Of a DNA stretch of 64,000 nt, positions 9,250 to 49,900 are shown in pieces. Position 1 is the stretch's first letter, and every line of letters starts with the position of its first letter. The notes beneath the pieces were generated by a model. It was given only the letters and a program-made list of their open reading frames with translations, did no database searches and was not told the origin of the DNA. Origin of the DNA: Podarcis melisellensis (Eukaryota). The position numbers and the translations under genes are program-made. The stretch lies in the NCBI GenBank assembly GCA_964234715.1, contig OZ174275.1. The stretch is one strand, 5' to 3'.

Positions 9250-9423
9250 GTCGGCTAATCTGGGGGTGTAAAAGCCCTTCAGGGTGGTATATCTTTCCCA
9301 GATAAGTATCCGAATTGAGCGAGTCCTCGGCTAGGCGAATGGGTTACTTAGAAACCCCAGCCGCTTCTATGCTTCTGCCTGCTTCAGCCACACTGCTGCT
9401 GGAGTAAAGAGCGGCACCTCCGC

Positions 9424-9470: not shown

Positions 9471-9696
9471 CGAAACCAATCCTCATGGGAGGGGAGCAAC
9501 GGCGGTCACGAACGACCTCTGAGAGGGCCCGAAGTGCCTGGCGCTAGCAGAATCCCTCTGAAAACAAGCTGAAGGTCGTCTCCAAAGCGTCGCGGAGATT
9601 CTGAGGAAGTTTGGCGGCGGGTCTCAGCCTTTAAAAGTCAGGGAAAGGGGCTGGGTTCCCTCTCCCAAAATGGTTCGCTCTAAGCTCGGGAACCCC

Positions 9697-9755
9697 TGAC
9701 GTAAATATCCTTATATGGCATACATCCTGTGCAAAGGGGGCGTAACTGACGGGAA
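9697..9755 (-). promoter_or_regulatory. c-fos SIE + serum response element: SIE TTCCCGTCA (9755-9747), Ets/TCF CAGGAT (9729-9724), CArG CCATATAAGG (9718-9709), AP-1/CRE TTACGTCA (9704-9697)
   Basis: All four motifs read directly, in canonical c-fos order, ~300 bp upstream of the inferred TSS; perfect CC(A/T)6GG. Confidence 0.93.
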
Positions 9756-10705
9756 CGCTTCAGGGCTGAGGCCAAGGGATGGTGCGTGCCTGTGGTAGCA
9801 ACGGCAGGGGGAGTGGAGAGTAAAAGCAGCAAGAGCCGCAGCAAAGGCTTCTGCATGCAGATTCTGCCCATTTACTGCTGACCAGACACTGAAGTGACAG
9901 CTTAAAGAGACAGAGATGCAATTTTGCCCATCATCTCCACAAGGAGAGTCATATAAACCTTCACGAATTCACTGATTCTATGATCTCATAAGATCAGCAG
10001 CTCTGGAATTTCTAAATTTTAGATGATATGGCATTCACAGGAATGTCCTCTGCCCACTCTGAAATAGGGGTGATGATATGCAGCATAAAGCCAAGGTGAT
10101 TAAATGGGGGATACAGAACAGATTTTTACTCACAGGTTAGTTTTTCAATTGCATTGGACTACATAATTACCTTTCTACTGTTTGGTGTTAAGTCCAAAGA
10201 GTGCAGTGATCATATGAGAATAATTATTATTTATTCTGGACAAGGTTTGTTCTTCTGGATATAGGCAATGCAGTCCTCATCATATTCACACATGCAGCAG
10301 GCCTCAGTGGTCATTATTCCCACATTACTGTCTCAGAAATGAGATGAGCTCATAATGCCCCGAGCCTTCCTGTTGCCGTAAGTGAACCCACCCACATCTC
10401 TGGGCCTGGTGCGTTCTTCTTATAAGGATTTAAAATGTTAATATTGACACTACTATCAAATCTCTATTTTATGTTTGTTCATGTTTAAGAATGTTACATT
10501 TACAACCAAACAAAGCTTTTCTAATATCAATATTACTCATCACACTACAGGAATGAAATTTGGCGAGACTGAAATCCTATACCCACTTATCAGGGAGTAA
10601 ACCCCACAGAACTTAATAGGATTTACTTCTAAGTGTAAGTGCACATAACTGTTCATTATCGCCCTTTCACTTCTTATTAGGATCAAGTGAATTCAATATT
10701 GCTTT

Positions 10706-11092: not shown

Positions 11093-12018
11093 GTTACACA
11101 CATTAAGGACATTTTAAGGTAACTTTTCGTTGTGAAATTTTAGAACATATTATCATGTGGACTGCAAACCCATGTACTGTATTATATAATCTGTCTTAGC
11201 CTTCCATAATTGTTATCGCTTGTTCATTTTCTTTGGAATTTGTAACATGATAGGCAGCCCTAATTAAAGGCTTTCCCATTCCAGTTCACAAAGGTTGTTC
11301 TAGTTCATGCAAGGGACGATCCTTGCCTCCACTACAAACAGTTACAAAACTTCCATTCATTTCAGTTGTGTCAGCATTTTACCTTCTAGTAATTACATGC
11401 AAAAATGCATGTGAAGAAACCAACACTGCAGTTCATGTACCATTTACTCAACACAGTACTGGAGAAACTGATTGCTCAGGGGTTTCTAGAATGGTTTTAG
11501 GTCATTATTGAGGTCATCATCTGTAGGTTAGGTACTAGGGGCTTATGAGAGGAAGGTTCATTCCAGGTGGACACCTCCTGTGACTTGCTTGGAACCACCA
11601 GAATATATTCTAATGGGACTTATAAAGCAAATGTCTTGATGCTGAATTTCCGCAATAAGAATTTCACACTTTTCCTGGTGCTCAGAGCTCTTCACATAGA
11701 TTATCACAGAGATTCTTGCATATCATTGTAAACACAATTGAGAATTATTATCCACATAATAATATTACAATTTAAAGCCCTAAATGGCTTGGGTACAGAT
11801 TGTCTGAAAGATCACCTTCACTGATATAATCCTGTCAGTATGCTAAAATCTACCACAGTCAAGATTAGTTAGGTTGCTGTATGCAAGAGTAGGCCTTCTC
11901 AGTGGTGATCCCCAAACCATTCAACTTCTGTTCCCAAAGACCTTCCTCTTTACAATTGCCTTCAACTTATATGATAAACAGCTTGGATCTTCAGAGTAGC
12001 TTCTCATTTGTTTGACTA

Positions 12019-12151: not shown

Positions 12152-12779
12152 TTTGACTATATTTTTATATTGTAATTTGTCTCTCACTCCCTTGCTCATT
12201 ACTTTGTGAGAAAGTAGTCCTAGAAAGTGGCTTAATTAATGAATTAAAATAATAATAATAGTGCAGAGGATCAAACATAGCCAGTGATCTAAGGCAGCCC
12301 ACCAAACTCATAGCAGTGCTAAGATTTGAACTAATAATCTGCATGCAGCTCATTACCCATCCTCTCAACTACTATATGCTTTAACTAATAAAACAGACTA
12401 AAGCAAGAGATAATAGACTCAGGCTCCCCTTGCAGGCACTGGATTTATCACAGCAGGATACCCAGATTTCCAGTTTAACCTGGAAATATCACCAGATTAA
12501 CCACTAAGTGGTTCAGAATCCCCCTTTTTTTACTTAAACAGTTGTGTTGATAAGATAGCAAGATTTTAAGTCACACAGAACACTCCTTCAGACTGGAGGC
12601 TACATCTCAAAGTAATCTCCGCACGTTTTTCTTCCCATAGTGGGGCCTCATTTTCACTCTACATTTCTTTTAGCCGCTTCTATGCAGCAAAAACGAAGCA
12701 AATAAACTGAGGTTTATGGTATGCAACCTAAACCGCGGAGCTATTACTATGGGAACCTATATTTACTGCTCCTGCAAAT

Positions 12780-13750
12780 AAAATTCCTGTCTCTGAGGAC
12801 CCAAATGGTTTCTGCGTGCAGTCTTGGATTGGGAAGGAATACCGCACGTGCGCCCTATGTATGGAAAATATAACCTAACGTCCTTCCTGAAGAGAGAGCA
12901 CGGAGCTATGGAATATTCTGCACGTTCTCTAGTGCCGCGATCACGAGACACTGACTTAATCCCCCGGGGGCTCTCGCTAGGAGAAAGGACTGGCGGATGC
13001 AAAAGTCTCTCTCCAGGAGAAGGGTGAAAATTGCGCGCGGGGTTCCGGCTATTCCCCATTACTGGAATGTCCCAGAAACAGAGTGCTTTGCCAGGAGGGA
13101 GCAGGCACCCGGCCGGGACTGCTAGGATGCGCCCAGCCCGCCTCTGGCGGCCGGTAGGGGCTCTTGGGAGGCTGCCAGGGAGCTGCGGTAACAGGTAGAG
13201 GAGGGCTCTCTCCTTTCCCGGAGCTGGGATTTGTTATGATCCGCGCTTGTCCTCTGCAGGGAAGCCCGGAGAGGAGGGAGGGAGCGAGGCGGCAAGGCAG
13301 CCAGCCAGACCGCACTCGCCCGCCGGGGAGGAGCTGGCGTGGCCGCCGCCGCCGCCGCAGCGAGGCGAGCCGGGTGGCGCGTTGGTCACAACAAACAGAA
13401 GCTCGCTCTCTCCCCGGCGCAGTTTCTAGGCAAGGGAGGAGCTTCGCCCAGCCCGAGCCTGCCGATTGAGCTCATAGGCTAGAAAGGCAGCCAGGCGGGG
13501 AGGGATCTGGGCCCTGGAGGCGAGGCGGGGAAATCGGGCCAGCTGCTATTTCGAGGTGTCCCCGTCAGCGCCAGGGACAGGCAGCTTAGGCGCCTCGCCC
13601 CGGGGAGTGGAGCGATTCTTCTCCTGGGTGGGGCGAGACAGGTCCGTGGGGGCGATTTTCTGGCTCCCCGGATTACATAAATCGGCTCAGGCCCCCGAGA
13701 GATAGAAGCCCAAACTCAGGACGAAACGCGGCCCTCCTCTTGCACCAGCT
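12780..13750. promoter_or_regulatory. Orphan CpG island ~3.4-4.3 kb upstream of FOS; likely enhancer or ncRNA promoter
   Basis: GC/CpG-rich stretch in an AT-rich background, (GCC)n run, E-box CACGTG at 12845; no recognisable protein. Confidence 0.6.
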
Positions 13751-15164
13751 AGAAATTGCTTAAGGCCTGCTGGTGTTTGTTGCCAGCTCACCCATCAAGA
13801 GCAAAATACGACAAGCTCCCGTCCCAGGTTGTTCTAGCCTAAGGACAAAGGATCCTTTTCTAAAGCAAATACAGTACAGTAGATGATTTTGTTGTTCAAA
13901 TAGCTCATCGGTTAATCTTTGGCCTCACGTTGTTTTCTTTGAAATCATAAATGGTTTGTCACATGGCCTTTGCTCCAGACTTGGAAGGTCTGACCTTATT
14001 ATTGCCATTATACAAACGGGCAACTGAGGCCAAGAGAAAGTAACTTGTTCAACATGACAAACAAGTCATCACACAGATTTCAGTTCTATAACTTTTTCTT
14101 AAGTCCCAAGCAATAGGTAGAGCAATTCTCAGAAATGTATACCCCACACCAATCAGCATACTCCACATTTAAAACCACAATTTATGTTACGTCAAAGTAT
14201 CTCTGGCGTCAAGCTGTACAGGGATGTACAGAGACGAACAAGTCTGGAAGAATCCAGTCAGCCAGTCAGTTGAACTCTGGTCAGCAATTAAATAGGCACT
14301 CATATAACCTCCAGTCTAAAGTTGCATTGTGATGTATTTTAAAACTGCAGAAAAGCCATGTTGAAAGCAGCCTTTAAAGTAGGTCATCCTATCAACATAT
14401 CAAAAATTAGGTACATGGCTGAAATATTATATCAAGCTTTGCTGAGTTATGAAAGAGATGCTCACTGGATTAATATAATATAATATAATACTGTATAAAT
14501 GTTTTGGTTTATAAAAGCCGGTTCTCAAAGTTCGATCATACTACAGTGTGAGTCTCCTGTGACCAAGAAACAGACCTGAGTATGGGGCTGAGCAGATGAG
14601 CAATAACACGACAATTTTATATTGCCAGTTACATTTTCTGCAAAATACAGTGTCTTATAAAATAAGAGACATATGGTAATTCCAATCATGTACGCACCAG
14701 CAGACAACTCTGCAGTAACCCCTACACTACAAAACTATTTCAAAGCAGTGTGTGAACATAAATAGCTTCAGTAGTCTAAATCAGAATCAGCTAGGGCAGC
14801 AAAGGACAGTGAGCATGATAAGGTTAGATCCAAGCTTCAAGTGTTTAAGGAGTTGCTCACCCAGTTGGACTGTGAAGGAGAATAATTCACATAGTAAAAT
14901 GACCACATTCCAGGTCTCACAGCTGTCTTGATTTTTCAGACTTTTGCCAAATGTGCTCATTGCTGGGAATAACTAACAGAAGCAGCCTTCCGTTTGGACA
15001 CAGAAGGCAATGGTCTGAGGAAAAAACTAATTTGTACATAAATATTTGTACAAGCTATTAAAGGACTTCTTAACTCAGTTCATCAGCTCCATGTGTTTTA
15101 TTGCTGCCCGCAAACTAGACCAACCCAAAGTGCATAGTAGTCAAAATAAAGCCCTAATCTACTT

Positions 15165-20347: not shown

Positions 20348-21044
20348 GTTTACTGACAATCCACGCCTTTTGAGAAGGGAGTAACTATTTCACGTGCTGG
20401 GTGTTCCCAGAGATTAACTTTCAGGGAAAGCTCGCACAGATCTTCAAAAACTTCCAGGTGTGTAATGAGACAAGTTAAACCTGCTGTACCACTTAACCTC
20501 CTAGACTGGCATCTAACCCAGTGATGGCAACACCAGTCTACTGTACTACTTGCAATCTTACCTGTTTGGTTTTGGTTTTTTGTATGGGGATACTGTATCC
20601 TTTCCCCGTGGCAATAAAAGGTGGTGGGAAGAAGAGCAATTTTTAGCAGAAACGGGTATTGAAAAGTTTATAGTTTTCTTTTCTCCCCAGCCAGTTGTCC
20701 ATTTCTGATTTCCTTTGCAGCAGCAAGACAAAGAATAATAATTGCCTATCACATGCCTGTTTTCTGCCAACAGCTTTTCAGGCTCCTTGAGCAGGTTTTC
20801 TTCACTCTGAGTGCCTTTCCAAACAGGTCCAGTACAGTGACCCTCACAAGTTGGGAAAGACAGATGTGTGTCAGAAACTTGATAGCCTTCCCCACCAGCA
20901 TAATAATATTACAAAAGGGTTCTTCTCTCTGTACATAAGGGTGTGTCCTCAGAGTTTCATCACTTTTTCTTTTCTAACGTCATGAGATGGGTGTTCAAGC
21001 ACAGAAATACTGCTGTAAGCCATTCTACTAAAAAAACAAAAAAA

Positions 21045-21225
21045 CAAAACGAAGAAGAGTCTTCTGGCACCTTAAAGACTAGCCAGTTTTGTTGTTGCAT
21101 GATACTGTATTTCATTCACTCCAGTCTATGAAAACATGTGCCGTAAAAAAACTAATTAGTCTTTAAGGTGCCCAAAGATGATTTGTTGGTTTTGCCGTAA
21201 CAGATTAACATGGCTAACCTTATAG
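21045..21225. mobile_element. Penelope-like element terminal fragments in inverted arrangement (similar relic at ~43925-44045)
   Basis: ggcaccttaaagacta ... tagtctttaaggtgcc inverted pair plus 'taacatggctaacc', typical of reptile Penelope ends as recalled. Confidence 0.55.
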
Positions 21226-23259
21226 AAACTGGTTTTGTTTCACTAGGAAGCAGTGTTATCCCTCATTATGAAATCTCATTTCCCCAAATGCAGCCTGCAG
21301 CTGAGTTCAACCGATGGTGTGGATCTGCATATACTTTGCTGTAAGAATGTAGGATGAACCTGCTGGATTAGGCCAATGGCCTGTCCAGTTTGCATCTGAT
21401 CAGGCGCCTGCAGAAAGCCTACATGCTGGAAAAGAGTACAACAGCATTCTGCCCACCTGCAATTCCCACCAATTGGTATTCATAGGCATAACGTCTCTAA
21501 CAATACATTTAAATGTCTTCTTATAAAATCATAGCATTATGGAGTTGGAAGGGACTCTGAGGGACAGCTAGTCCAACCCCCTGCAATGCAGGAATCTCAA
21601 CATGTGGTCTCCCTTCCAACTTGAAACCATAGCAGACCATAGCTTTGAAAATGTGCTATCATAATGATGATGTATAACTTGTGGCTACAGCTTGATATAT
21701 GCCTATAAATCCTGTGTCTTTAGAAGAACAAGTCAACTGTAGGATTATTTCTAAGTAGTACCAAGTCTGATGTCCCTCTCTAGAGGTCAGGTTTTGGAAG
21801 TATAAGCAATGGGGGAATCAAAAAAGAGACAGAACGGTGCCATGTTTGTATCCTCAGAAACATAATAACATTTATTAAAGTTGGATATGGTATTGCACTT
21901 TCATAGATAACACTATCAAAGACATATTACAAGATACACAAGCCAAAAGTGTAGCTAATTTCTGCATAGCATCTGCACGTGTGCTAAATTCACAAATGGA
22001 GAGTAATGAGCCAGCAACGGAAGTGCTACTTGAAGAAATCCTGTCTTGATCTTGCACAACACCTGAGTAATATTTATTTGTCTGGAAAGATCATCAATCA
22101 AATACAGGTAAGTGCCCATCCCTGGGCCAAGCAGGAAGCAGATATGCTACCCACGAATGGTGCTCCACCCGCACAGCAGCAAGGAACCAGACATGCAATA
22201 AAACTGACCTACCCTTTGAAAGCGGCATTTGTGCTACTGGGATAAAGTATTGTTTACCTATACTACCTGTCATAGTTCAAAATTATTAGTGTTTTTGGGC
22301 AGAGGAAATAACAATGTACAGCTGCTCCTTAAAAGTGCAGGGAAGCACTGGGCAGCACAGGTGGGTGGGAACGAGTGAAGAGAAACACAGCAAGGGTTCA
22401 GCATGAAAAAGATGGTCAAGTTAAGAGCATAAATTGATCTCTTCCTTCAAGTAATGAACACACATTAATGCACATGTTTGTTTATTATTGATTTACAAAA
22501 GTATTTATATACAGCCCTCTTGCAAAACCTCAAGGTGGTGTACAATAACATAAAAACATTCAAAACCAATACAGAACAATAATTAAAATAAATGGCTACT
22601 CAAGCAATATTTTAAACTGCATAGGTCCGCATATGTGTTGAGGAATGAATACAGATACACACAGAATGTCATGCAAGACTTTCAGGCGTGTAGCCAGCCA
22701 TAAACATGTACACAAATAAGTGATGCAGATGTTCACGTGTATACACCCTCTTCAGACACATAAACAAAATATGTTAAACGTAATGTATAGATGTTACCAT
22801 ATTAAAAGAAATGCACCATTCCCCCACAGACAATTAGCATAAAACCCACATGTAGGTTGCTACATCTGAGGATATTACCCACTTCCTTGTTCACAGTATA
22901 CTGTACATACAAAATCATCAAACATGACAATCTAGTTGCAGGTTTGGTGCTAATTCTTAAATATCCATAATGCCTCAACACACAGGTGTTGTACAAGAGG
23001 CAGTTATACATGTGTTCCGCATTTTATGGCACTGATAAAAATTAATGACCAAAACTGGGGGGTTGGGGTTGGGGGGGGAGAGAATAAAATTGATATCCCA
23101 TAGAGAAGTCGTAGAAGTTTGAGGAATCCTAAAGGTATGCAATACTTGATAGTGCATAAACACGTGTCCATGGTACCAGAACGATACACACGACCTCAAG
23201 AGGCAAATGAGGTGTTTCTCCCCATATGTAAACAGCTTTCCCCCAACAGTCCAGAGACT

Positions 23260-24260
23260 CCGTGCGAACGCTTCTATCCTCCTCCTCCCGTCCCCGTCTG
23301 ACCCCCGTTGCAGGTTCAGGGCCAGGTAGGCCCACCTGTTCAGGCCTGAGCAAAGCGCCCCGCCAATCCCAGAGCTCCTCTCCTGCGCATCAGCCAATCC
23401 CGTCCCTGTTGCCAAGCTTTGGCTGGCTAACTGACGTTGCTCTGGCGACGGCAAGAACGTTGGGCGCTCACAAAACACACCGACGTCAGCGCGTAGTAAC
23501 CACGGAAACGAGCCCCGCAACGTCATCGCTCTTTCTCCCTTCCCCTTCAGAAATCGTTAGCCACGCAGGCGGCGGCGTCACCCGCTGAGGGGAGGAGGAG
23601 GAGGAGGCGGCTCCCGGTTGTCATAGCAGCTCAGGGAGGTGGGGCTCCGTTGCCAAAGCAGCAGGGAAGGTAGGGCTCGGTTGCCATGGCAGCGGGAAGG
23701 TCTGTTTTGTTTTGGGGTGGAGCTGTAATTAGAAAGCGAGGGCTGAGGGCGGCGAGGTGCCGGCGGCCCCACAGCGAGAGACCGAGAGGGAAACTGGTTT
23801 GTTTTGATTTCTGAGATCCCGGGGGCTTTGGTGTCTCGAAGTGACGCTCCGGGAGCGACTGGTGGGGGTGGGGCGGTTTGAAATCGGGATTCCCTCTTAT
23901 AATAATTAATAATAACATATTATTTATACCTTGCTCATCTAGCTGAGTTTCCCCAGCCACTTTGGGCGGCTCCCAATCGAGTGTTAAAAACAATACAGCG
24001 TGTGTCCGCCTCACAATATTCGGGGATCTGGACCAGAGGTCGATCCCGGCAAACGTTCGTTGTGGGGACGGCCAAGGGGGTGGATCCTGTCGTGTCTGCC
24101 TCAAGCGGCGAAACGTGAGGAAGCGCACTCGCGCTGTCTGCCGCACACGCACCAAAAGGGAAACCCAAGTCTGACGCACCGATCAACAACAACCCCCGCG
24201 GCTCTCGACTCAAGTCTTTTCTGCTCTTTCTTACGTAACGCAAGCCGTGTTCCCTGCATC
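23260..24260. promoter_or_regulatory. Orphan CpG island ~14 kb upstream of FOS with five X-box-like (RFX) motifs, several CRE half-sites and two CCAAT boxes
   Basis: GTTGCTCTGGCGAC 23436, GTAACCACGGAAAC 23496, GTTGTCATAGCAGC 23617, GTTGCCAAAGCAGC 23649, GTTGCCATGGCAGC 23680; TGACG/CGTCA near 23432, 23484, 23521, 23576, 23842, 24172; TTACGTAA near 24231. Confidence 0.7.
23895..24000 (-). mobile_element. LINE (L2-like) 3' tail with (TAT)n end; related copies at ~33410-33477 (+) and ~51920-51990 (-)
   Basis: Shared core 'gagtggctggggcaacccagtcagat...ggtataaataataa' in three places. Confidence 0.6.
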
Positions 24261-27200
24261 CCCCCCAAAAAAAATAATTAAGCGTTTTCCTCGTGCCTTT
24301 AATGAAAAGATAAAGCAAATCGTATCTTAAAAAATGAGAGAGAAATAAAGCCGGCTTGAGCATGTGCCCCAACTGACAAAATAATTAGTAGTCATATTGA
24401 TTATTATTATTTTTTAAATGTTGTTTAGGTTCAGATGATGGTGGATATCCAGCAATCAGGTATGATGGGAGCTGGAGTCCAACAATATCTCACTGCAATG
24501 GCAGCTTATCTGATATTTCTGTTATATTCCATTTAATATATTTTGTCTATGTGTATGAAGAGGGTGTATACAAATGTTAACATCTGCATTGCTTTGCTTG
24601 AATACATAGCCATCGGTCATCTCATCTCAGCTTAGTTCTGAATTGAACCAGCAGTTTAAAGTGTTATCAAAGAATACTGGGTCTGGGTATGGGGGAGAGA
24701 CACTGTCCAAGTGTTTTATATTCTATATTCTCACACAGCTGCTTTGGAATTGTGGTATGGCAAATCCATGAGCCAAGGTAGTTTTGTTTTTAACAGACTC
24801 GAGAATTGCTTTAAAATTTACTCACTATATGGCCTTGGAGCGTATATACCTGTTTTACACACACCCTGCTGAAAATTCCTGGTTAAATCAATGGTTCAGA
24901 GTCAATGTATTATTCTATAAATTACAAACTCAGTTTCAGCAATTCAGCAATAGAGAGTAAGAGGTTAAAGCAGCCAATTTCTGAGCATGTTTCAATGGCA
25001 GCAGCCAGTATGTGTGTCTATTGACATATTCAGCACAATTAAAAAGCAGTATTAAATTATTATTTGTAGCAAAGCGCTCTTTGTTACTTTGCCATATTTA
25101 TATCGCTAAGATATACCTATCCATCAATTCTGCTGCCTGCCTGTTTAAGAAATACCAATCAGTCAAAGCTGGACCTATGCAAAATTATCACACTACCCAC
25201 TTGGTATGTATAATGTTTTGGTTTTCTAATGGCCTTTGTCTAATCAACATTGCAGAGCACAGTAGTTAAAATCCCAGTGAACATTTTTATTTGCTGTGAT
25301 TATATCTGTAAACTCCACAATAATTGTGTTAGCTTCAGCACTCCAGTCCTTACAGTTATGGTAATCTTGAAATCTTGAAGTTTGCTTCAAATAAGCTTCT
25401 AGCCCTCATGAGTGTGCAGAAATGCTTCGGAATTAGACCATGGAAAAAAGATTATATAGCAGGTGGCAAATAATATGAGTATATATTCATTATTTCTACA
25501 ATATCATTCCTTTTTAACTCAGAACTTTGGATTTTAAAGGGCTGACTCATTATGATTTTGAATTAGAGTTAAATTTACTAGTCTGATTACGGAAGACCCA
25601 CCTACAAGTAATTCTCAGGAATACTAGGATGGCGTTTCCAAGTGCTGTTGTAAATATACTTAGACATTTATGACAATTGATAAACTAGTGACTGAATACT
25701 GTCTGTTGGGAAGGGAGATAACTTATCGGTTTTGAAGTACAGGCATCTGGGCACTGGCCCAGTTTTGGTAATTCTCTGCACCATATACCTGCTTGAACTG
25801 TCAAATGCCACTGCATTCTCTCAGATTGCAGTTGTAATTGTTGCTTTAAGTTTTTCTTTATCTCTATATCCTCTGCCTGCTAAAAGACTGCAGGGTCAGT
25901 TCAGACTTGTTCTTGCACCACACCTATCTGCTAATAAGTAGTATAGTACTTACATATGGGGATTCCCTCACCCTGAACCTGGGGTGGGGTGGGAATTAAC
26001 AGCAATTTCTCACGGCAATCTATGAACTCCCTTTCATCATAATGAATATGTTACAAAACTATAGTCTGTAAGATGCATGTCCTCAGGAGAGTGACGTAGA
26101 AGGTTAGGCAGCAATTCTGAAATAGTGATAAGTTGCTGTAAAAAAGAGGAAGTGATTGTTGACATAGCGAAATACAATCTTGAACACTAGCTTGGGGTGT
26201 GTGTGAACTCTGCTGAACTCCATTGTACGTACTTCTAAGCAAACATGGGTAGGATCAGGCTGAACTTTTAATCGAATGCGGGTCTGAACATCTGACATTA
26301 GTCCCTCTCTTATGCAAAGGGTAGAAATTACTGATTGATTGTCCTATCTTATTCAGGACAAGTCTAGGCTTGTTACCTTACTCTGCAGTTCTCTTTCCTC
26401 CATTGGCAATGCAAATGCTCCTTAATAAATAAATAAACATTTCTCTCAGCTATCACTTCCATCCTTTTTGAAGAAGGTTGCCAGAAATATTTTAGGGACT
26501 GTATTCTGGGTATAGTTTAAATCCAGAAGTACAGATACACAATTGTCCATTCTGAGCAGAATTAGAGAAGTATCCAGCCTTAGAAAAAGGAATCACCTAT
26601 TAAATGTTCCAAAATATTAGATATGCACCTAAACACATTATAGCCGGTTTATTTCTTTGGACCCGCAGCTTGCCCTATCCTAAAGTTTTTGGGAAGGTAA
26701 CAATACTTAAAAACAAAAGCCATTAGCAGAATACAGACAGCTGGGTAAAATCTCATCTCTTATCCTAATGTAGTATGATATCATATACTATCCCATCAAC
26801 TTCTACTCATCGTTTCTCACTGGGTAGAAACCATTCATCTCTCCTTACTGAGGTGTCACTTTTCTTTTTATTACTGCTCCCTGCTGTTGTGCTTTTAATC
26901 TGCAGATATTAACAGGTGGTAACACTTAGGTCAATGCTATTAAAAACTTTACCAGCTGATGTCTGTAAATTTCTGCTAAAGTCATGAAAGTAGGCCCGGC
27001 TGATTTGTTTCCAGTCAAATGTCTTCTCTTACGTGTTTTTGTTCTGTTCTAGATTACAGATTATTAGCTATAGTGTTTATTAGCTAACCCTAGCTTCATA
27101 TGAAATTCCAAGCTCCTAGAGTTTCATGTGTTTGTTTTCAGACTTTAAATCTCTTCTCACAGAGGGTTCCCATAAGCAAATATGTGACAGTCACTTATTT

Positions 27201-29420: not shown

Positions 29421-32400
29421 GTAGGCCCACGTTAGGACCTCGATAAATAGCCTCTGGCACTGGCAGTCTGGGACATAGCCTTGTCTTTCTTCACATTCTG
29501 TTCCCATTGATTATAATCAGTGATTATTTTTGCCTAATCTTTAATCCTTGTCCTTGTTTTTCTTTCTTTTATTGCATATCTAGTTTCGTGGTTTTTTTGT
29601 TTTGTTTGTTTACATAGCCAATACATGTAATGAAAAGTGCAGGCATGAGCTGCATTTGTTTATACACAGAAGGCATTTTAAAAATTGTGCACATTGTCCT
29701 GTGCAGTTTTGTGTTCTGTCCAGAAATGATTTTTATTTTTTACAGCGCAACTCACTATTTTGCCACTTAAGGTAATGGTCCAGCTTTTTTAACCTGAAAA
29801 CAGCTTGATTCTCTGGTCATTTCCCACCAACTGCTGTCAGATTGGATACAATTGTTTTATTTTATGAGCATATAAACAGATATGAGGGTTTTCTGTTGAT
29901 TCTAGGAACTTGACAATAACAAATTGCCCTTCTACCAATTTACCATAGTATGAACAGAGAAAGTGATATTCCGGTAGCTGCCCCTTTAAAAACACCCAAA
30001 TGGTATTGAATTATCATATGTACTCTTAAATATCTCATGAGGGAATATAGGCTCTGCCAGGGAAATTACTGGAACTGTAATTGGGACAAGACTGATCTTT
30101 GCCAGAGATGAAATCCAAGAAGCCCCTAGGCCCAGGGAGTTATGTGACAGGAGCAAAGCTCATAAATACACATAACATTTGCAACTCACATGTAAAGCAT
30201 ATGTCTCATTCATTTCTATTTTTATAACGAAAACATACTGTAACTATTGGTTAATGGGGGTATTTTTTTCCCTTAAGCAAAGGCTATTTTGAAGCCCTGG
30301 AAATCATTTTGGTGAATGTGATATATTTGTTTTATGATGGCTTGTAACTGGTGTTCCCCTTCTTCCAGACAGACACAAAAGCTAAAATCTGAGTTTCCCT
30401 GGAAGCAACTGTAGTAAGATCTTTCCATTTGAGCTGATGTGAAAAAGCCATGTGTGCATTCTCTGTATTTAAAATGTTATATGGGATTTCACTCGGAAGT
30501 GAGGACTGTTTTACTGTGTCTGCTGTTAAATTTGTTGTCCTGCCTCCTTTGAAAAGCTTAGAGATTTTGCATGGTCACATTTGGTCTGATCCTACAATCC
30601 ATGTGTTCTTTTGATGCTCTCTATAGCAACTCCATGCCATGGATAGGGCCCAGGTTTCCCAGAGTCAAAAATACAGCGGTCCAAGCAGGAAACTAGTTGT
30701 AGTAATTAGCTGTGTATTAAATCTCCTGATAGTTACACATTGGCTCAGGTAAACCCATTTCCCGATATATCTTCCTTATTTCCATAATCAGCTAGCTGAA
30801 ATAATTTGATAGTGGCAATGTACCTTTAAGCCTAACCAAGGAGACTGAGACTTTGGAGAGTCTGATCTTGTGACACCTATCTTTGTGTGGTGTTTTTAAA
30901 CATTAACTGAGAATTAAATGGCAAAAATACTCTCTGTTTCGATTACTGTTAACTGGTATTTTATTGCATGTGTTAGCTTACCTTTTCCAAAGCACAGGAT
31001 GGGCAGCCTGTAATTCACCACACAAATTGTGCCCAATAAATAGCAGGGACAAGGATTCCATCTGTGTGGGGGTTTTTTGTTTTAAAAATAAAGCTTCCTC
31101 GCTTTTCAAAAAAGAGTGGCATCAGTCATACGCATATAGCACTCAAGTGCCACACACGCACAGAGTACTGCTCAGCATCTGCGAGAAAAATTGTGTGGAA
31201 ATATATGGTGCTGATTAGCTGCATTAGAACCATAGAGGAAACAAGGCAGCTCCAAAGCAATGTGGGTCATGGCTAGATGCTTTATATAACCCAGAACCAC
31301 AGAGAAAACCAAAATAGCTGCCTCCCTGCTGCTCAGCTAGTCTCCTCCATCAAGCGTGGATAAATTTAGAGCAGGCAGTGACGTTCGCCTACGTCTGCAT
31401 AGGGACTCCAGGGAGACAGAGAAAGCCAGGCTCAGGGCATTGCCATCAGTAGCACAGGCTGCCAGAGCATTCGAGCACAATCTGTCACTAGGGCAATTGT
31501 GCATGAACCCAGGAGATGGGGAAGGTAACTGAATGGTGCATAGCCATTTATGATTAAGAAACACCGTTGTATAAAAAGCTAATGGGAAAAATGAGTACTG
31601 CAGATTCACACACACAGAATATTTCCAAATTAATATGAATTTTCCTGTATCTACATCAGAATTTTATTAAATACACAGCTTGTTTAAGTCTACCCATATA
31701 AAAATAGGTTTCAAAGGCAATGACAGTGGTGAAGTGGCTAGTTTTAATCATTGTTGTCCCCTGATTATCTGCAATTGAGATATCACCTCTTTGGAATGGA
31801 TAAAGGCCTTTTTTGAAGGGGTGATGCTGTAAATTACATCTTGTTGAAAACTCAGAATAACTACACAAGAAAATGAGGTGAAAATGCCCAGGTTACAGAT
31901 GGTATTAGATATTCGGATCCATATTAAAGCATGTAAATATGCTTGAAGCTGATTTTCAGAGATGCTGGCCACGATTCTCAATGCCTTCAAAGGAGCAATG
32001 ATCAGGCTTTGGAAAACCAGGTCAAAGCTGATTTAAGGGCCTATATATGGCTGTGTATCTAACGTCAGGCTTGTGCTCTGAACACTTTGACTTTAGCTGA
32101 TTTTCAATAGCCTATGGCCCAGATTCTAATTAGAGGTGTTATTTCAGAAAAAGATCAGAATGACTTAGTGAAAAATCATAGATAGACACGCTGTGCATTA
32201 TCTAGAAGCCAAATATAGAGAGGAATCAGACACACCCAACAAATACCAGTACAACCAGTCTACATCTGTTTCTACCACATTCTTAGTTCTCCTTTCCTCT
32301 AATATTGGGTGTCCCTTACTTATTTTTGTTAGTTGTTTTCCATCCATTGAAATCAGTGCTTTCTCTCTGAACATTAAGTATATATGAAGTTTTTATGGGT

Positions 32401-46900: not shown

Positions 46901-49900
46901 GTTGGATGCTACTACACAATGGCTGCTTTCACCCATAAATGCTACAAAGCATGAATTGTCCTGTAAATTAGCAAATCAGCCATGACTTGTTTCTCCAAAG
47001 CTTGGTTTGTTTTCCAACTATTCTTGCCTTGTGGCTCTGTAGCTTGGAGTGGGGTTGGCAAACAAATAATGGTTAAGCAAAGCTGTTGGGTTTAGACACA
47101 ATATAGACCAATATATAGTTAGAATCATAGAATTGTAGTGTTGGAAGGGACCCCAAGGGCCATCTAGTTCAACCCCCTGCAATGCAAAAATTCTGCCCAC
47201 ATTCTGTCCTGGGTAGGCTCGAACCACAATCCTTCTGGTTAACAGCCAGTCACACTGACCCATTGTGCCAAAGGAGTTAAAACACGCCATGTTTCATAAG
47301 CCAGCGACAAACCATGGCTTCACATAGTTTATGGCTAGCAAACAAACCACCATTAATACACTGGTCTGGGTTCAGACATCAAAACAAACCACAATTTGAC
47401 TAAATAAACATGAAGTGGCATTAATTACCTAAAACTGCTGTTAATGATGCCTGTGTTTCACCCCCACCCAAATACTCATCCAGGAGTGATCTAGCATGCT
47501 GGTCAATGAAGTCTTAACTTAGTTTGAGATTGTACATTAAGCATTCCTTCCCCCAGAAGGCCACACTGATATAATAGGGTGTGTTATATGCCAGCAGCCT
47601 TTGTTGTGTCCTGACTTTGGCAACTGATGAAATAACTACAGAACAAATATGCTCTGCTCCAGGCATGTACAGATCTTATCTGAGGCCTGGGGTGGGAGTC
47701 TTGTTAGAATAAAGTTAAAAATTCAAGCAAAAAAGCAGTTGGTCCCTGGTAGGGACCCCCAGCCTGCTTACCCCTCCAAGGCCTGGGGCAAGTGTACCTG
47801 GCTGCCCCCATGTCTGCATGGGCCTGCTCTGCTCATTCAGAATAAAAAGTTTTAAAGTCTGGGGTTTTTTGACCAGCTGCTCACATTAGCACCTTAACTT
47901 GTCAGGGTAGACAAGTTATTAATGATCACACATTAGTTTATTTTCCAGAGACAAAATTCTCTTCTCTCTTGAAGACCTTAGTCTCAGATCAGCTGTTGAC
48001 TGGGATTTATCATTTGCAGTTAACAGTGATTCTTTGTCATGCCATTTTCACGTGTTTTAATGGCTCATCACTGTGGTGCTTGCTCTCTGATCATGACATC
48101 CCATAATTAACAGTTAGGCTTTCCGTTCTGGAAGAATGTACCCAATGTGCTAGTTGGTTACGTAGTGGAGGTTCTTTAATGGCTCTCATCCTACTTGATC
48201 TCAGTCTCGTGTGGGTGCTTATTGTTCAGGCTGGCAGTATGGGGAGAAAAGCTGTGTTTGTGAAGGATGATGATGTTACTGTGCATAATGCCAGAGTATT
48301 GTGGTGGAACATTCCCCCCTCCCTGAATGGCTGCTCCCCCACAATTGTGTAGGCTGACTTTTAAGCAGTTTGCCCATACTAGGTATACTTAGGGCAACGT
48401 GCCTGGCAGTATGTAGGCAACTATCTTGTTGTGCCAGATGAAGAGAAAAGTAGAGCTGGCATAATATATTTTTGGACGTGGCCCATCTAATGGTGGAAAG
48501 GAACTAGTTTGTGTGTGCATGCATCAGTCACTTCTTTATGGAAGAAACATGTTTAAGGAGAAGCTATTACTGCAGTAAACAAGGCCTCACATGGCTTTTA
48601 ACATGCTCTCATGGGGCCTTTAAAGCTTGCTTTATTTTATGTTTGCTCCTTTGGCAGTGGGGGAGCATACAAATGTGCTGTCTCCTAGAGCTATTAGTTA
48701 TGCAATTATAAATTATGCAATTATTGTCTGGTCACTGTAAATCCCAAACTTGTCCTACTCAGAGCTGCGGATAATGTATGTTTTGTAAAGTGAATGAGTT
48801 CATCCCCCCCCCCCCCAGTTCCCACATCTTCTTCTGACTTTTGTTTTTAGTGGATGCTTTTATGGGAATGTCTTCAACTTAACATGCCAGAGGCTAATAA
48901 TGGAGACGGTATAAATAAATTTGAAATTAAAATTTTAGCAAAAATCTCTTCAACTATGGTGGGGACAAGGAAAGCACAGAAGTCAATTGCCCAAGTGTTC
49001 TAGGAAAATCTTTGTCTTCTCTTCCTCCCCCTCCCATAAAATTTAACATAGAACTTGGATGTTAACAACTTTGCCTCTCTTAATTTTCATATTTCCTACA
49101 GATTACTGACTCAGCTGGGCATATTCTCTATGTCAAGGAGGATGCAACTAAGGGCAAATTTGCTTTCACCACGGAGGATTACGACATGTTTGAAGCCTGC
49201 TTTGAGAGCAAGCTCCCTGTGGGTAAGTGTGATAGTCCCTGTTTGGTGCTCCTGGTATGCCTCTTCTCTACTTTCTCATCCATCTCCTGTAGGATCCATT
49301 TAAAAGGGTAATGTTGAGCAAGGGCCAGGGGTATCTGCTTTGCCAAGTGTTTTGAGGTCTTCTGGACTGAGAGAGAACATTTAATCCCAAGGGAGTCAGT
49401 TCCTAAAATTACTAATGAATGCCAGTTGTTGCATTCCTTCCCAGAAGTGTTTGCATTTGAGCAGTGCTGAAATCACAATTGCCCACCCAAAGGAAATTTT
49501 ATAATCCAGAATGAGACACAAGAAAAACAGGGTCATAGAAGAGGACTGGTTGGCTATTACAGAAATCTTAAGAGTCTCTTCATGAAAGAAGTGCTTTGCT
49601 GTCTTCCACAGCAGATAGAGATGTGCAGTTACTGGAATTTTATTTAGGAGAGGGCCCAAATTCTCCACACTGTAGCCTATACACACCTGACATTGAGAGG
49701 GCACGGGCATAACCAACTGTTCCCAGCCAGTAAACAGAGAGTGGAAAGGAAGGAAAACAGACACTGCAGTTGATTCTCCTTTCTGCTTCAGGTAGAAATT
49801 AACACCATTGTTCCCTATTCATATGAGACATCCAAGAGGGATTCCACCATCAGTACGCTGAATTTTCTGTACAAGAGGGCAAGGGAATACTAACTTTGGT

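Follow-up and report, generated by a model that had tools for sequence, protein, structure and literature searches.

In mammalian neurons, RFX3 and CREB meet at a shared class of activity-dependent elements. In human neurons the peaks of RFX3 show the cyclic AMP (cAMP) response element (CRE) among their top co-occurring motifs, 567 sites are common to both factors, and the CREB signal drops when RFX3 is reduced (bioRxiv 10.1101/2025.02.27.640588); upon stimulation, CREB1/CRTC1 are found near RFX3 (PMC12236590). RFX motifs can give rise to promoter as well as enhancer activity (PMC6357130), and among RFX2 targets the RFX sites typically lie very near start sites (PMC4498915). Here we describe a dense arrangement of RFX-type X-boxes, CREs and CCAAT boxes in a CpG island upstream of FOS, found in a 64,000-nucleotide stretch of DNA (the window) from the lizard Podarcis melisellensis (contig OZ174275.1). 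The layout of these sites is non-random and under constraint. Probably, in our judgement, the island houses an old and tight cis-regulatory module, a TATA-less CpG-island promoter that is probably bidirectional and sits in the upstream territory of FOS. The module is an ancient composite of predicted RFX, CREB and NF-Y sites, the factors being assigned from their motifs.

The closest known class is that of the RFX3-CREB co-bound, activity-dependent elements. RFX3-CREB(-CRTC1) elements of mammalian neurons likewise combine an X-box and a CRE in one element beside an immediate-early gene of the AP-1 family (bioRxiv 10.1101/2025.02.27.640588; PMC12236590), and the published mechanism, in which RFX3 raises CREB occupancy, fits the abutting and overlapping X-boxes and CREs of the module. 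A preliminary description of this DNA had spoken of an undescribed regulatory system, which was overstated, since RFX3-CREB co-binding in mammalian neurons was already described in these same two reports. The papers name the FOSB and JUNB promoters together with unspecified enhancers, whereas the module lies 3-14 kb upstream of FOS with a transcript of its own; it also carries five to six RFX sites, has an NF-Y box whose spacing is fixed, and is known from sauropsid sequence alone. RFX target promoters of cilia and spermiogenesis genes (PMC4498915, PMC3414849) share with it palindromic 14-bp X-boxes within about 200 bp of the start, maybe with a forkhead-like tract alongside. Those promoters drive protein-coding cilia or sperm genes, whereas the X-box cluster of the module drives an unconserved non-coding RNA. 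Cilia and sperm RFX promoters usually carry a single X-box. The SXY promoters (named for their S, X and Y boxes) of class I/II genes of the major histocompatibility complex (MHC) have in common with the module the RFX/CREB/NF-Y trio, the order X, X2, Y and a spacing kept across species (PMC7866136, PMC4374748), but that spacing is 20-22 bp as against 33-37 nt here, and the module has several X-boxes and a setting unrelated to antigen presentation. Like the five activity-regulated enhancers of mouse Fos (PMC6357130), the module is distal, CRE-bearing, transcribed and placed in the FOS flank; unlike them, it has CpG-island promoter features, a spliced RNA and a core without CArG, MEF2 or AP-1 motifs.

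Motifs were scored by IUPAC consensus with mismatches and compared with shuffled sequence, rather than by weight matrix. All five 14-bp X-box-like sites of the preliminary description were recovered (X-boxes 1 to 5, at 23436-49, 23496-509, 23617-30, 23649-62 and 23680-93), with 0, 1, 2, 1 and 1 mismatches, respectively, to GTNRCCNNRGYAAC. The scan against a shuffled background that it had proposed, run with consensus and dinucleotide shuffles, revealed a clear excess: four X-boxes with at most one mismatch lie in 23400-23700, against a mean of 0.034 in 3000 shuffles, none of which (0/3000) reached four. Collapsing the tandem repeat that holds X-boxes 3 to 5 to a single copy still left three X-boxes against 0.03 expected, and no other CpG island of the window contains an X-box with at most one mismatch. 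The cluster is not explained as a chance product of GC-rich DNA.

That the last three X-boxes belong to a degenerate tandem repeat, spaced 32 and 31 bp apart, was confirmed by repeat finding. The further argument that this spacing places them on the same face of the DNA carries less weight, since such phasing is a simple consequence of a duplication unit of 31 bp; a similar period does recur in Rhea and Cuculus. Splice-donor-like sequence follows the repeat copies (AGGTRRG behind copies 1 and 2, AGGT behind copy 3), and a MYB-type CNGTTG overlaps the tandem X-boxes. Two other candidate features of the repeat were considered and rejected: CTCF sites, in which the core GG positions mismatch, and a start codon at the ATG in X-box 5 (GCCATGG), where the donor in use lies upstream of the ATG and the FOS-sense frame stops after 18 codons and is lost in birds.

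The X-boxes are interleaved with CRE half-sites, four of which (at 23432, 23484, 23521 and 23576) fall in 23340-23600 against 0.51 expected (P ~0.002). A CRE half-site overlapping or close to each of the first two X-boxes had been reported, and this holds: the site at 23432 overlaps X-box 1, the one at 23484 lies 8 bp before X-box 2, and X-box 2 is flanked by two half-sites in all, at 8-12 bp. In the conserved core of about 200 bp (23392-23590), X-boxes alternate with CREB/ATF sites, with X-box 2 standing between CRE b and CRE c; a single NF-Y box at fixed distance closes the core, and beyond its FOS-distal end follows a tandem array of further X-boxes. An X half-site and a CRE half-site are fused in the 9-mer GCAACGTCA, which has exactly two copies in the 64-kb window, both within the module and inverted relative to each other. 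Both of the CCAAT boxes reported earlier are present, as the identical 8-mer GCCAATCC at 23363 and 23394, 31 bp apart, but only one of them is conserved. Beyond the tandem repeat, a T/G-rich tract matches the forkhead motif RYAAAYA perfectly in birds and with one mismatch in the lizard, a weak assignment.

Comparison of five species (the lizard, Crocodylus porosus, Rhea pennata, Cuculus canorus and Corvus cornix) revealed that the module is old; lizards and archosaurs parted an estimated 280 million years ago. With the lizard core as query, blastn detected Rhea (E = 3e-14) and the crocodile (1.6e-5), and with the cuckoo module it detected Corvus (7e-91), Rhea (8e-84) and the crocodile (2e-34). 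All four archosaur matches lie upstream of FOS, collinear with the lizard, and share a conserved order: X-box 1 with CRE a, X-box 2, four CREs, a half X-box and one CCAAT box. That crocodile and birds keep these sites, and keep them in this order, lends strong support, at the level of sequence, to the composite RFX + CREB (+ NF-Y) module that the preliminary description had proposed. Conservation, which it had sought across squamates, was found through the archosaurs rather than other squamates. In the 10-kb upstream flanks of FOS from Pogona, Thamnophis, Rhineura, Tiliqua, Hemicordylus, Heteronotia and the turtle Mauremys the module was not found, which is no sign of absence there; in Pogona, Thamnophis, Rhineura and Tiliqua, homology of the fetched FOS flanks ends at 15-16 kb of the window, short of the island.

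Within the module, conservation concentrates on the motifs. With motif columns fixed from the lizard DNA ahead of any alignment, 41/55 motif columns were invariant, compared to 36/86 spacer columns (Fisher P = 1.2e-4). Invariant in 5/5 species are GGCAACGTCAG (the end of X-box 1 with CRE a), GCAACGTCAG, the GACGTC of CRE b, the GATTGGC of CCAAT box 2 and the GCAACA of the half X-box; the block of CRE c and its half X-box is identical at 11-13/13 positions across the five species, and CRE d with its flank at 20/23 between lizard and Rhea. X-box 1 has no mismatch in the crocodile and one each in Rhea and Cuculus, and in Corvus it carries an internal 1-nt deletion. X-box 2 has two mismatches in the three birds, though just 7-10/14 of its letters match the lizard, and three in the crocodile; this site is kept while its letters turn over, which is the pattern expected of selection on the site and not on the letters. 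Distances are likewise stable: CRE a to ATTGG measures 38 nt from start to start in 5/5 species, and X-box 1 to CRE a measures 13 nt in every species with X-box 1 scored. The inverted pair of GCAACGTCA recurs in the lizard and in each of the three birds, whose loci hold the 9-mer only in the module; a single further copy lies elsewhere among 11 FOS loci. The tandem array is more variable, with two X-box units in birds (31 bp apart in Rhea, 32 in Cuculus, 26 in Corvus) versus three in the lizard, where a lizard-specific insertion holds the extra copy (23617, nearest FOS) and the neighbouring GA-rich tract. Between the module and 31.2 kb, alignment of lizard and Rhea at the DNA level gave nothing further, and tblastx found no conserved coding sequence. 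A G-rich minisatellite with units of about 40 bp adjoins the tandem X-box side of the cuckoo module (Cuculus L005 1700-2060).

The island is also a promoter, as a spliced non-coding RNA starts within it in lizards. A search of sequencing runs returned 16 small runs tagged 'RNA?', from two related lizard species and four studies, each containing 6-17% of the words of 21001-27000. One run per study was mapped (four runs, including X1, X3 and X7), and the evidence for transcription is that of these related lizards. A contig of 1630 nt from run X3 (depth 28.5) places its first 58 letters on 23612-23669, skips 273 bases and resumes at 23943-25509. The skipped bases begin with GT and end with AG on the + strand, with donor AAG/GTAGGG and an acceptor after a pyrimidine tract ending in TAG. 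This GT..AG junction (23669/23943) therefore indicates a spliced + strand RNA pointing away from FOS and, together with coverage past 27000, it supports the earlier suggestion that the island is the promoter of an unannotated transcript. By the position of the junction, exon 1 contains X-boxes 3 and 4, and X-box 5 falls shortly after the start of intron 1; the distance upstream from the minimum start of exon 1 to X-boxes 1 and 2 and their CREs is 100-180 bp, and no X-box is further than about 180 bp from that start. Across the four studies and both species, coverage of exon 2 sets in near 23943; in the other three runs it starts at 23956-24075 and extends to 26.8-27.1 kb. Taken over the four runs, coverage reaches 26416-26920 in three and passes 27000 in one. 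By contrast, the four runs show next to no coverage of 21001-21400 (0-0.95), and X1 has none across 22401-23400.

Every test applied identified exon 2 as non-coding. Its first ATG meets a stop after three codons, its open reading frames (ORFs) have no Pfam or homologue match, and 1-nt indels at 24074 and 24259 in the relatives' contigs disrupt the two longest of them. ORFs at 22975-23526 (minus strand, across the island) and 23938-24372 (minus strand, exon 2) have no relative in the protein collection and were judged spurious. The exon 2 acceptor is supplied by a fragment resembling a short interspersed nuclear element (SINE), of which the 64-kb window contains no second copy. An upstream alternative first exon of TMED10 was rejected as an identity for the transcript, the observed exon 2 being one long continuous block; joints at 21468-21597 and 23968 have sides of about 21 nt at repeats and were taken as assembly artefacts. 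Toward FOS, contigs of X3 and X7 end 57-61 nt past the conserved ATTGG. This is the usual distance of an NF-Y box. A divergent FOS-sense start near 23337 is possible, on a strand deduced from the layout. Coordinates of all these features are collected in the table.

Table. Features of the CpG-island module, its transcripts and its orthologues (positions are those of the window unless a locus of another species is given).
Feature	Position	Strand	Remarks
CpG island housing the module	23201..23800 (600 bp)	.	GC 0.60-0.62, CpG observed/expected 0.85-0.89 (400-nt windows)
CCAAT box 1, GCCAATCC	23363..23367	+	lizard only; aligns to no CCAAT in crocodile or birds
CCAAT box 2, ATTGG in FOS sense	23394..23398	+	conserved
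Half X-box CTGTTGCC	23406..23413	+	conserved
X-box 1 with overlapping CRE half-site a (TGACG), contains 9-mer TGACGTTGC	23432..23449	+	X-box with 0 mismatches
Conserved GAACGTTG block, no factor assigned	23455..23462	.	8/8 identical in 4/5 species, 7/8 in Corvus
CRE b, GACGTCA (7/8 of the palindromic CRE), 8 bp ahead of X-box 2	23482..23488	.	
X-box 2	23496..23509	+	1 mismatch
CRE half-site c fused to half X-box, GCAACGTCATCGC, second and inverted copy of the 9-mer composite	23517..23529	+	
CRE half-site d (CGTCA)	23576..23580	+	
Degenerate 31-bp tandem repeat, 3 copies, one X-box each (23617-30, 23649-62, 23680-93)	23602..23695	+	Tandem Repeats Finder and a second repeat tool
T/G-rich tract, forkhead-like	23699..23717	+	13/19 identical, lizard vs each bird
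Exon 1 of the non-coding transcript, minimum extent	23612..23669	+	58 letters of the X3 contig before the junction
Intron 1, 273 nt, GT..AG, holds X-box 5	23670..23942	+	
Exon 2, long, non-coding	23943..27000	+	spliced contig reaches at least 25509
SINE-like fragment of a highly repeated element, supplies exon 2 acceptor	23936..23999 (64 bp)	.	depth in thousands, four runs; many loose ends at 23999
Divergent FOS-sense transcript, candidate	21986..23337	-	X3 and X7 contigs end at 23337 and 23333; strand inferred from layout
Module orthologue, Cuculus canorus	L005 2180-2440		ATTGG 7.6 kb from FOS start codon
Module orthologue, Rhea pennata	L009 6670-7014		ATTGG 3.0 kb from FOS start codon
Module orthologue, Corvus cornix	L010 2346-2631		ATTGG 7.4 kb from FOS start codon
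Module orthologue, Crocodylus porosus	L011 35-187, cut by locus edge		ATTGG 9.8 kb from FOS start codon

FOS itself lies on the minus strand of the window; both its bZIP exon and its last exon were identified by direct reading, and the last exon ends in TLLAL and shows up to 92% identity with c-Fos of gecko, amphisbaenian and snake. Its start site was placed near 9400 by means of a promoter with elements resembling a sis-inducible element (SIE), a serum response element (SRE; Ets/CArG), a CRE and a TATA box. The proximal segment with the SIE-like and Ets/CArG (SRE) elements (9684-9776, minus strand) is 83-87% identical to Cuculus, Rhea, Corvus, Crocodylus and Mauremys. With the start near 9400, the island lies 13.9-14.3 kb upstream of FOS, in agreement with the orphan CpG island 14 kb upstream that had been reported. 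On its other side, exon 1 of TMED10 (43.2-43.7 kb, + strand) lies about 20 kb beyond the island and was the sole match in Pfam scans of 20 ORFs across the 64-kb window. Rfam gave no match at the island, along the transcript or at a conserved element at 31.3 kb. CArG, MEF2 and AP-1 motifs are typical of FOS enhancers, as in the mouse elements. In 23000-24100 we found no CArG or AP-1 motif and one MEF2-like match, which lies in intron 1, outside the conserved core.

How such a module might work is suggested by its layout and by the human neuronal data. RFX dimers would occupy the X-boxes and CREB/ATF dimers the abutting CREs, where RFX may assist CREB/ATF binding, by analogy to human neurons. 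NF-Y would sit on the ATTGG at its fixed distance, and the complex could hold the island open and recruit RNA polymerase II both ways. In the lizard, the module would then give rise to the spliced non-coding RNA leading away from FOS and probably to a second transcript toward FOS. The cooperation itself, the responsiveness to cAMP or calcium and the identity of the target gene are likewise predictions. Because the DNA module is conserved and the RNA is not, the selected function is most likely that of a DNA element, or of transcription through the element.

Several observations weigh against the island being first of all a constrained promoter. The occupancy by RFX, CREB and NF-Y is predicted from motifs, and GCAGC replaces GCAAC in one half of 3/5 lizard X-boxes, where we expect it to weaken that half-site. 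The splice junction appears in one contig only, the 'RNA' label of the runs is a guess, and the start of the RNA is bounded (at or upstream of 23612) rather than mapped. Moreover, birds share neither the donor nor the acceptor used in the lizard; at the donor, Rhea reads GG and not GT. With this lack of conservation, and with the acceptor placed in a fragment of a repeat, the RNA could be a by-product specific to its lineage.

In the main competing explanation, the module would act chiefly as a distal FOS enhancer, its RNAs being by-products and RFX gating the access of CREB for cAMP and calcium signals. It overlaps with the promoter reading and does not exclude it, and we regard it as possible though unlikely to be the principal role. 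In five sauropsids the module keeps its orientation and its place 3-14 kb upstream of FOS, with an unconserved transcript body, and in the lizard it sits between FOS and the deeply conserved element at 31265-31416; adjacency to FOS is, however, the default in the absence of rearrangement. Precedent exists in the five activity-responsive enhancers around mouse Fos and in the dual promoter and enhancer activity of RFX motifs (PMC6357130), and also in the finding that RFX3 loss dampens immediate-early induction and CREB binding, though the same paper names the FOSB and JUNB promoters rather than FOS (bioRxiv 10.1101/2025.02.27.640588). The conserved core without CArG, MEF2 or AP-1 motifs, and the promoter-like look conferred by CpG island, CCAAT box and spliced RNA, speak against an enhancer as such. 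A homotypic X-box cluster at a start site, with CREs and a forkhead-like tract beside the tandem X-boxes, also resembles a cilia or sperm promoter, on which RFX2/RFX3, CREM and a forkhead factor would drive a non-coding RNA of germ cells or multiciliated cells that has nothing to do with FOS; in a variant, a bidirectional promoter would yield a small germline RNA precursor. Cooperation of RFX with forkhead factors is known from cilia genes (PMC3414849), and spermiogenesis genes have RFX2 sites at their starts (PMC4498915); MYB-type CNGTTG overlaps the tandem X-boxes, and the coverage on either side of the module is long and looks unspliced. Yet RFX2 shares hardly any targets with CREM, and A-MYB hardly any with RFX2 (PMC4498915). 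The lizard's forkhead match is imperfect, no gene of cilia or sperm lies close by, and RNA in at least 16 runs of four studies weighs against a very narrow tissue pattern. We consider this reading of the module improbable.

The remaining two explanations are far weaker candidates. As an MHC-type SXY enhanceosome, the module would be a platform of the RFX5 complex, CREB and NF-Y for CIITA or NLRC5, and it does contain the same three motif types in the same FOS-sense order (X-box, adjacent CRE, inverted CCAAT) with spacing fixed across species. However, an SXY module needs its X box to lie 20-22 bp from the Y box and no more than 16 bp from the S box (PMC4374748), whereas the gap from CRE a to ATTGG is 33 nt and that from X-box 1 to ATTGG 37 nt, the same in five species; the module fails the X-Y distance that defines the class. 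No S box was recognised, no S-box matrix having been applied, and the conserved block 9 nt upstream of X-box 1 reads CAACGTTC; the X-boxes are of the dimer type, each a full palindrome, and the neighbours are FOS and TMED10, with no antigen-presentation gene. We give the SXY explanation almost no credence. The other, a functionless chance cluster of motifs or a neutral minisatellite in a GC-rich island, draws on 3/5 sites, which arose by duplication of one 31-bp unit and whose second half is imperfect. It is hardly tenable in view of the three sites that persist against 0.03 expected after the repeat is collapsed, and of a conservation of sites that links lizard, crocodile and birds and falls on motif columns more than on spacers.

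Further conserved sequence surrounds FOS in the window. A block at 31265-31416 (minus-strand sense; 153 nt) is 88% identical to Rhea (L009 2984-3136), far above its surroundings; its distance upstream of FOS is 22 kb in the lizard and 6.9 kb in Rhea. Read in FOS sense, it holds sites resembling CREs, one motif each of MEF2-like and CArG-like type, and TATATAAAG (31281-31289), and conservation ends a few bases beyond the latter; we found no Rfam match in it and no conserved coding sequence downstream. It could be a distal FOS enhancer or the TATA promoter of an unannotated FOS-sense RNA. Closer to the gene, 1.8-4.3 kb upstream of its start, non-coding blocks at 11240-11520, 12713-12894 and 13146-13685 show 65-77% identity in Pogona, Thamnophis, Rhineura and Tiliqua. 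Parts of them align to Cuculus (13501-13583) and Mauremys (13165-13241), and the third is a CpG island (12801-13800); all three blocks are candidate FOS enhancers. An X-box-like site, GTTCCCATAGTAAT (12743-12756, minus strand), lies in a conserved block 3.3 kb upstream of FOS, with aligned counterparts in Pogona, Thamnophis and Tiliqua and a conserved Ets/CArG-like stretch about 90 nt further upstream in FOS sense. It is a possible second RFX input near FOS.

Repeat fragments were found at 21542-21601, 23936-23999, 47123-47186 and 47207-47275, the first two at depths of thousands in the RNA-like runs. The copy of 21542-21601 at 47123-47186 adjoins a weak Rfam tRNA match (30.9 bits) that ARAGORN did not call, and is probably the tRNA-derived head of a SINE. 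In the protein comparisons, a 367-aa c-Fos protein (P0110) with 55% identity to lizard exon 4 stands in NCBI under Enterococcus faecium, as a hypothetical protein from a contig of 1365 nt; vertebrate DNA has almost certainly contaminated that bacterial assembly.

Read as a conserved CpG-island promoter, the module is a compact test object, natural and filtered by evolution, in which X-boxes and CREs are interleaved and an NF-Y box stands at an invariant distance. It makes testable the cooperative binding of RFX and CREB through GCAACGTCA, the role of spacing, which is known to matter in the MHC enhanceosome, and an RFX-dependent input into FOS. Should it only drive a lineage-variable non-coding RNA, it would still be a clean case of a conserved promoter with an unconserved transcript. 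More speculatively, and with considerable doubt on our part, the module may be a sauropsid-wide, perhaps amniote-wide, FOS control element, gated by RFX and responsive to CREB: a platform for RFX, CREB and NF-Y at fixed spacing, built like the MHC enhanceosome and serving immediate-early induction. RFX factors, known as regulators of cilia and neurodevelopment, would in that case set the strength of the FOS response to cAMP or calcium. To our knowledge, FOS itself has so far not been linked to any defined element whose motif layout is fixed.

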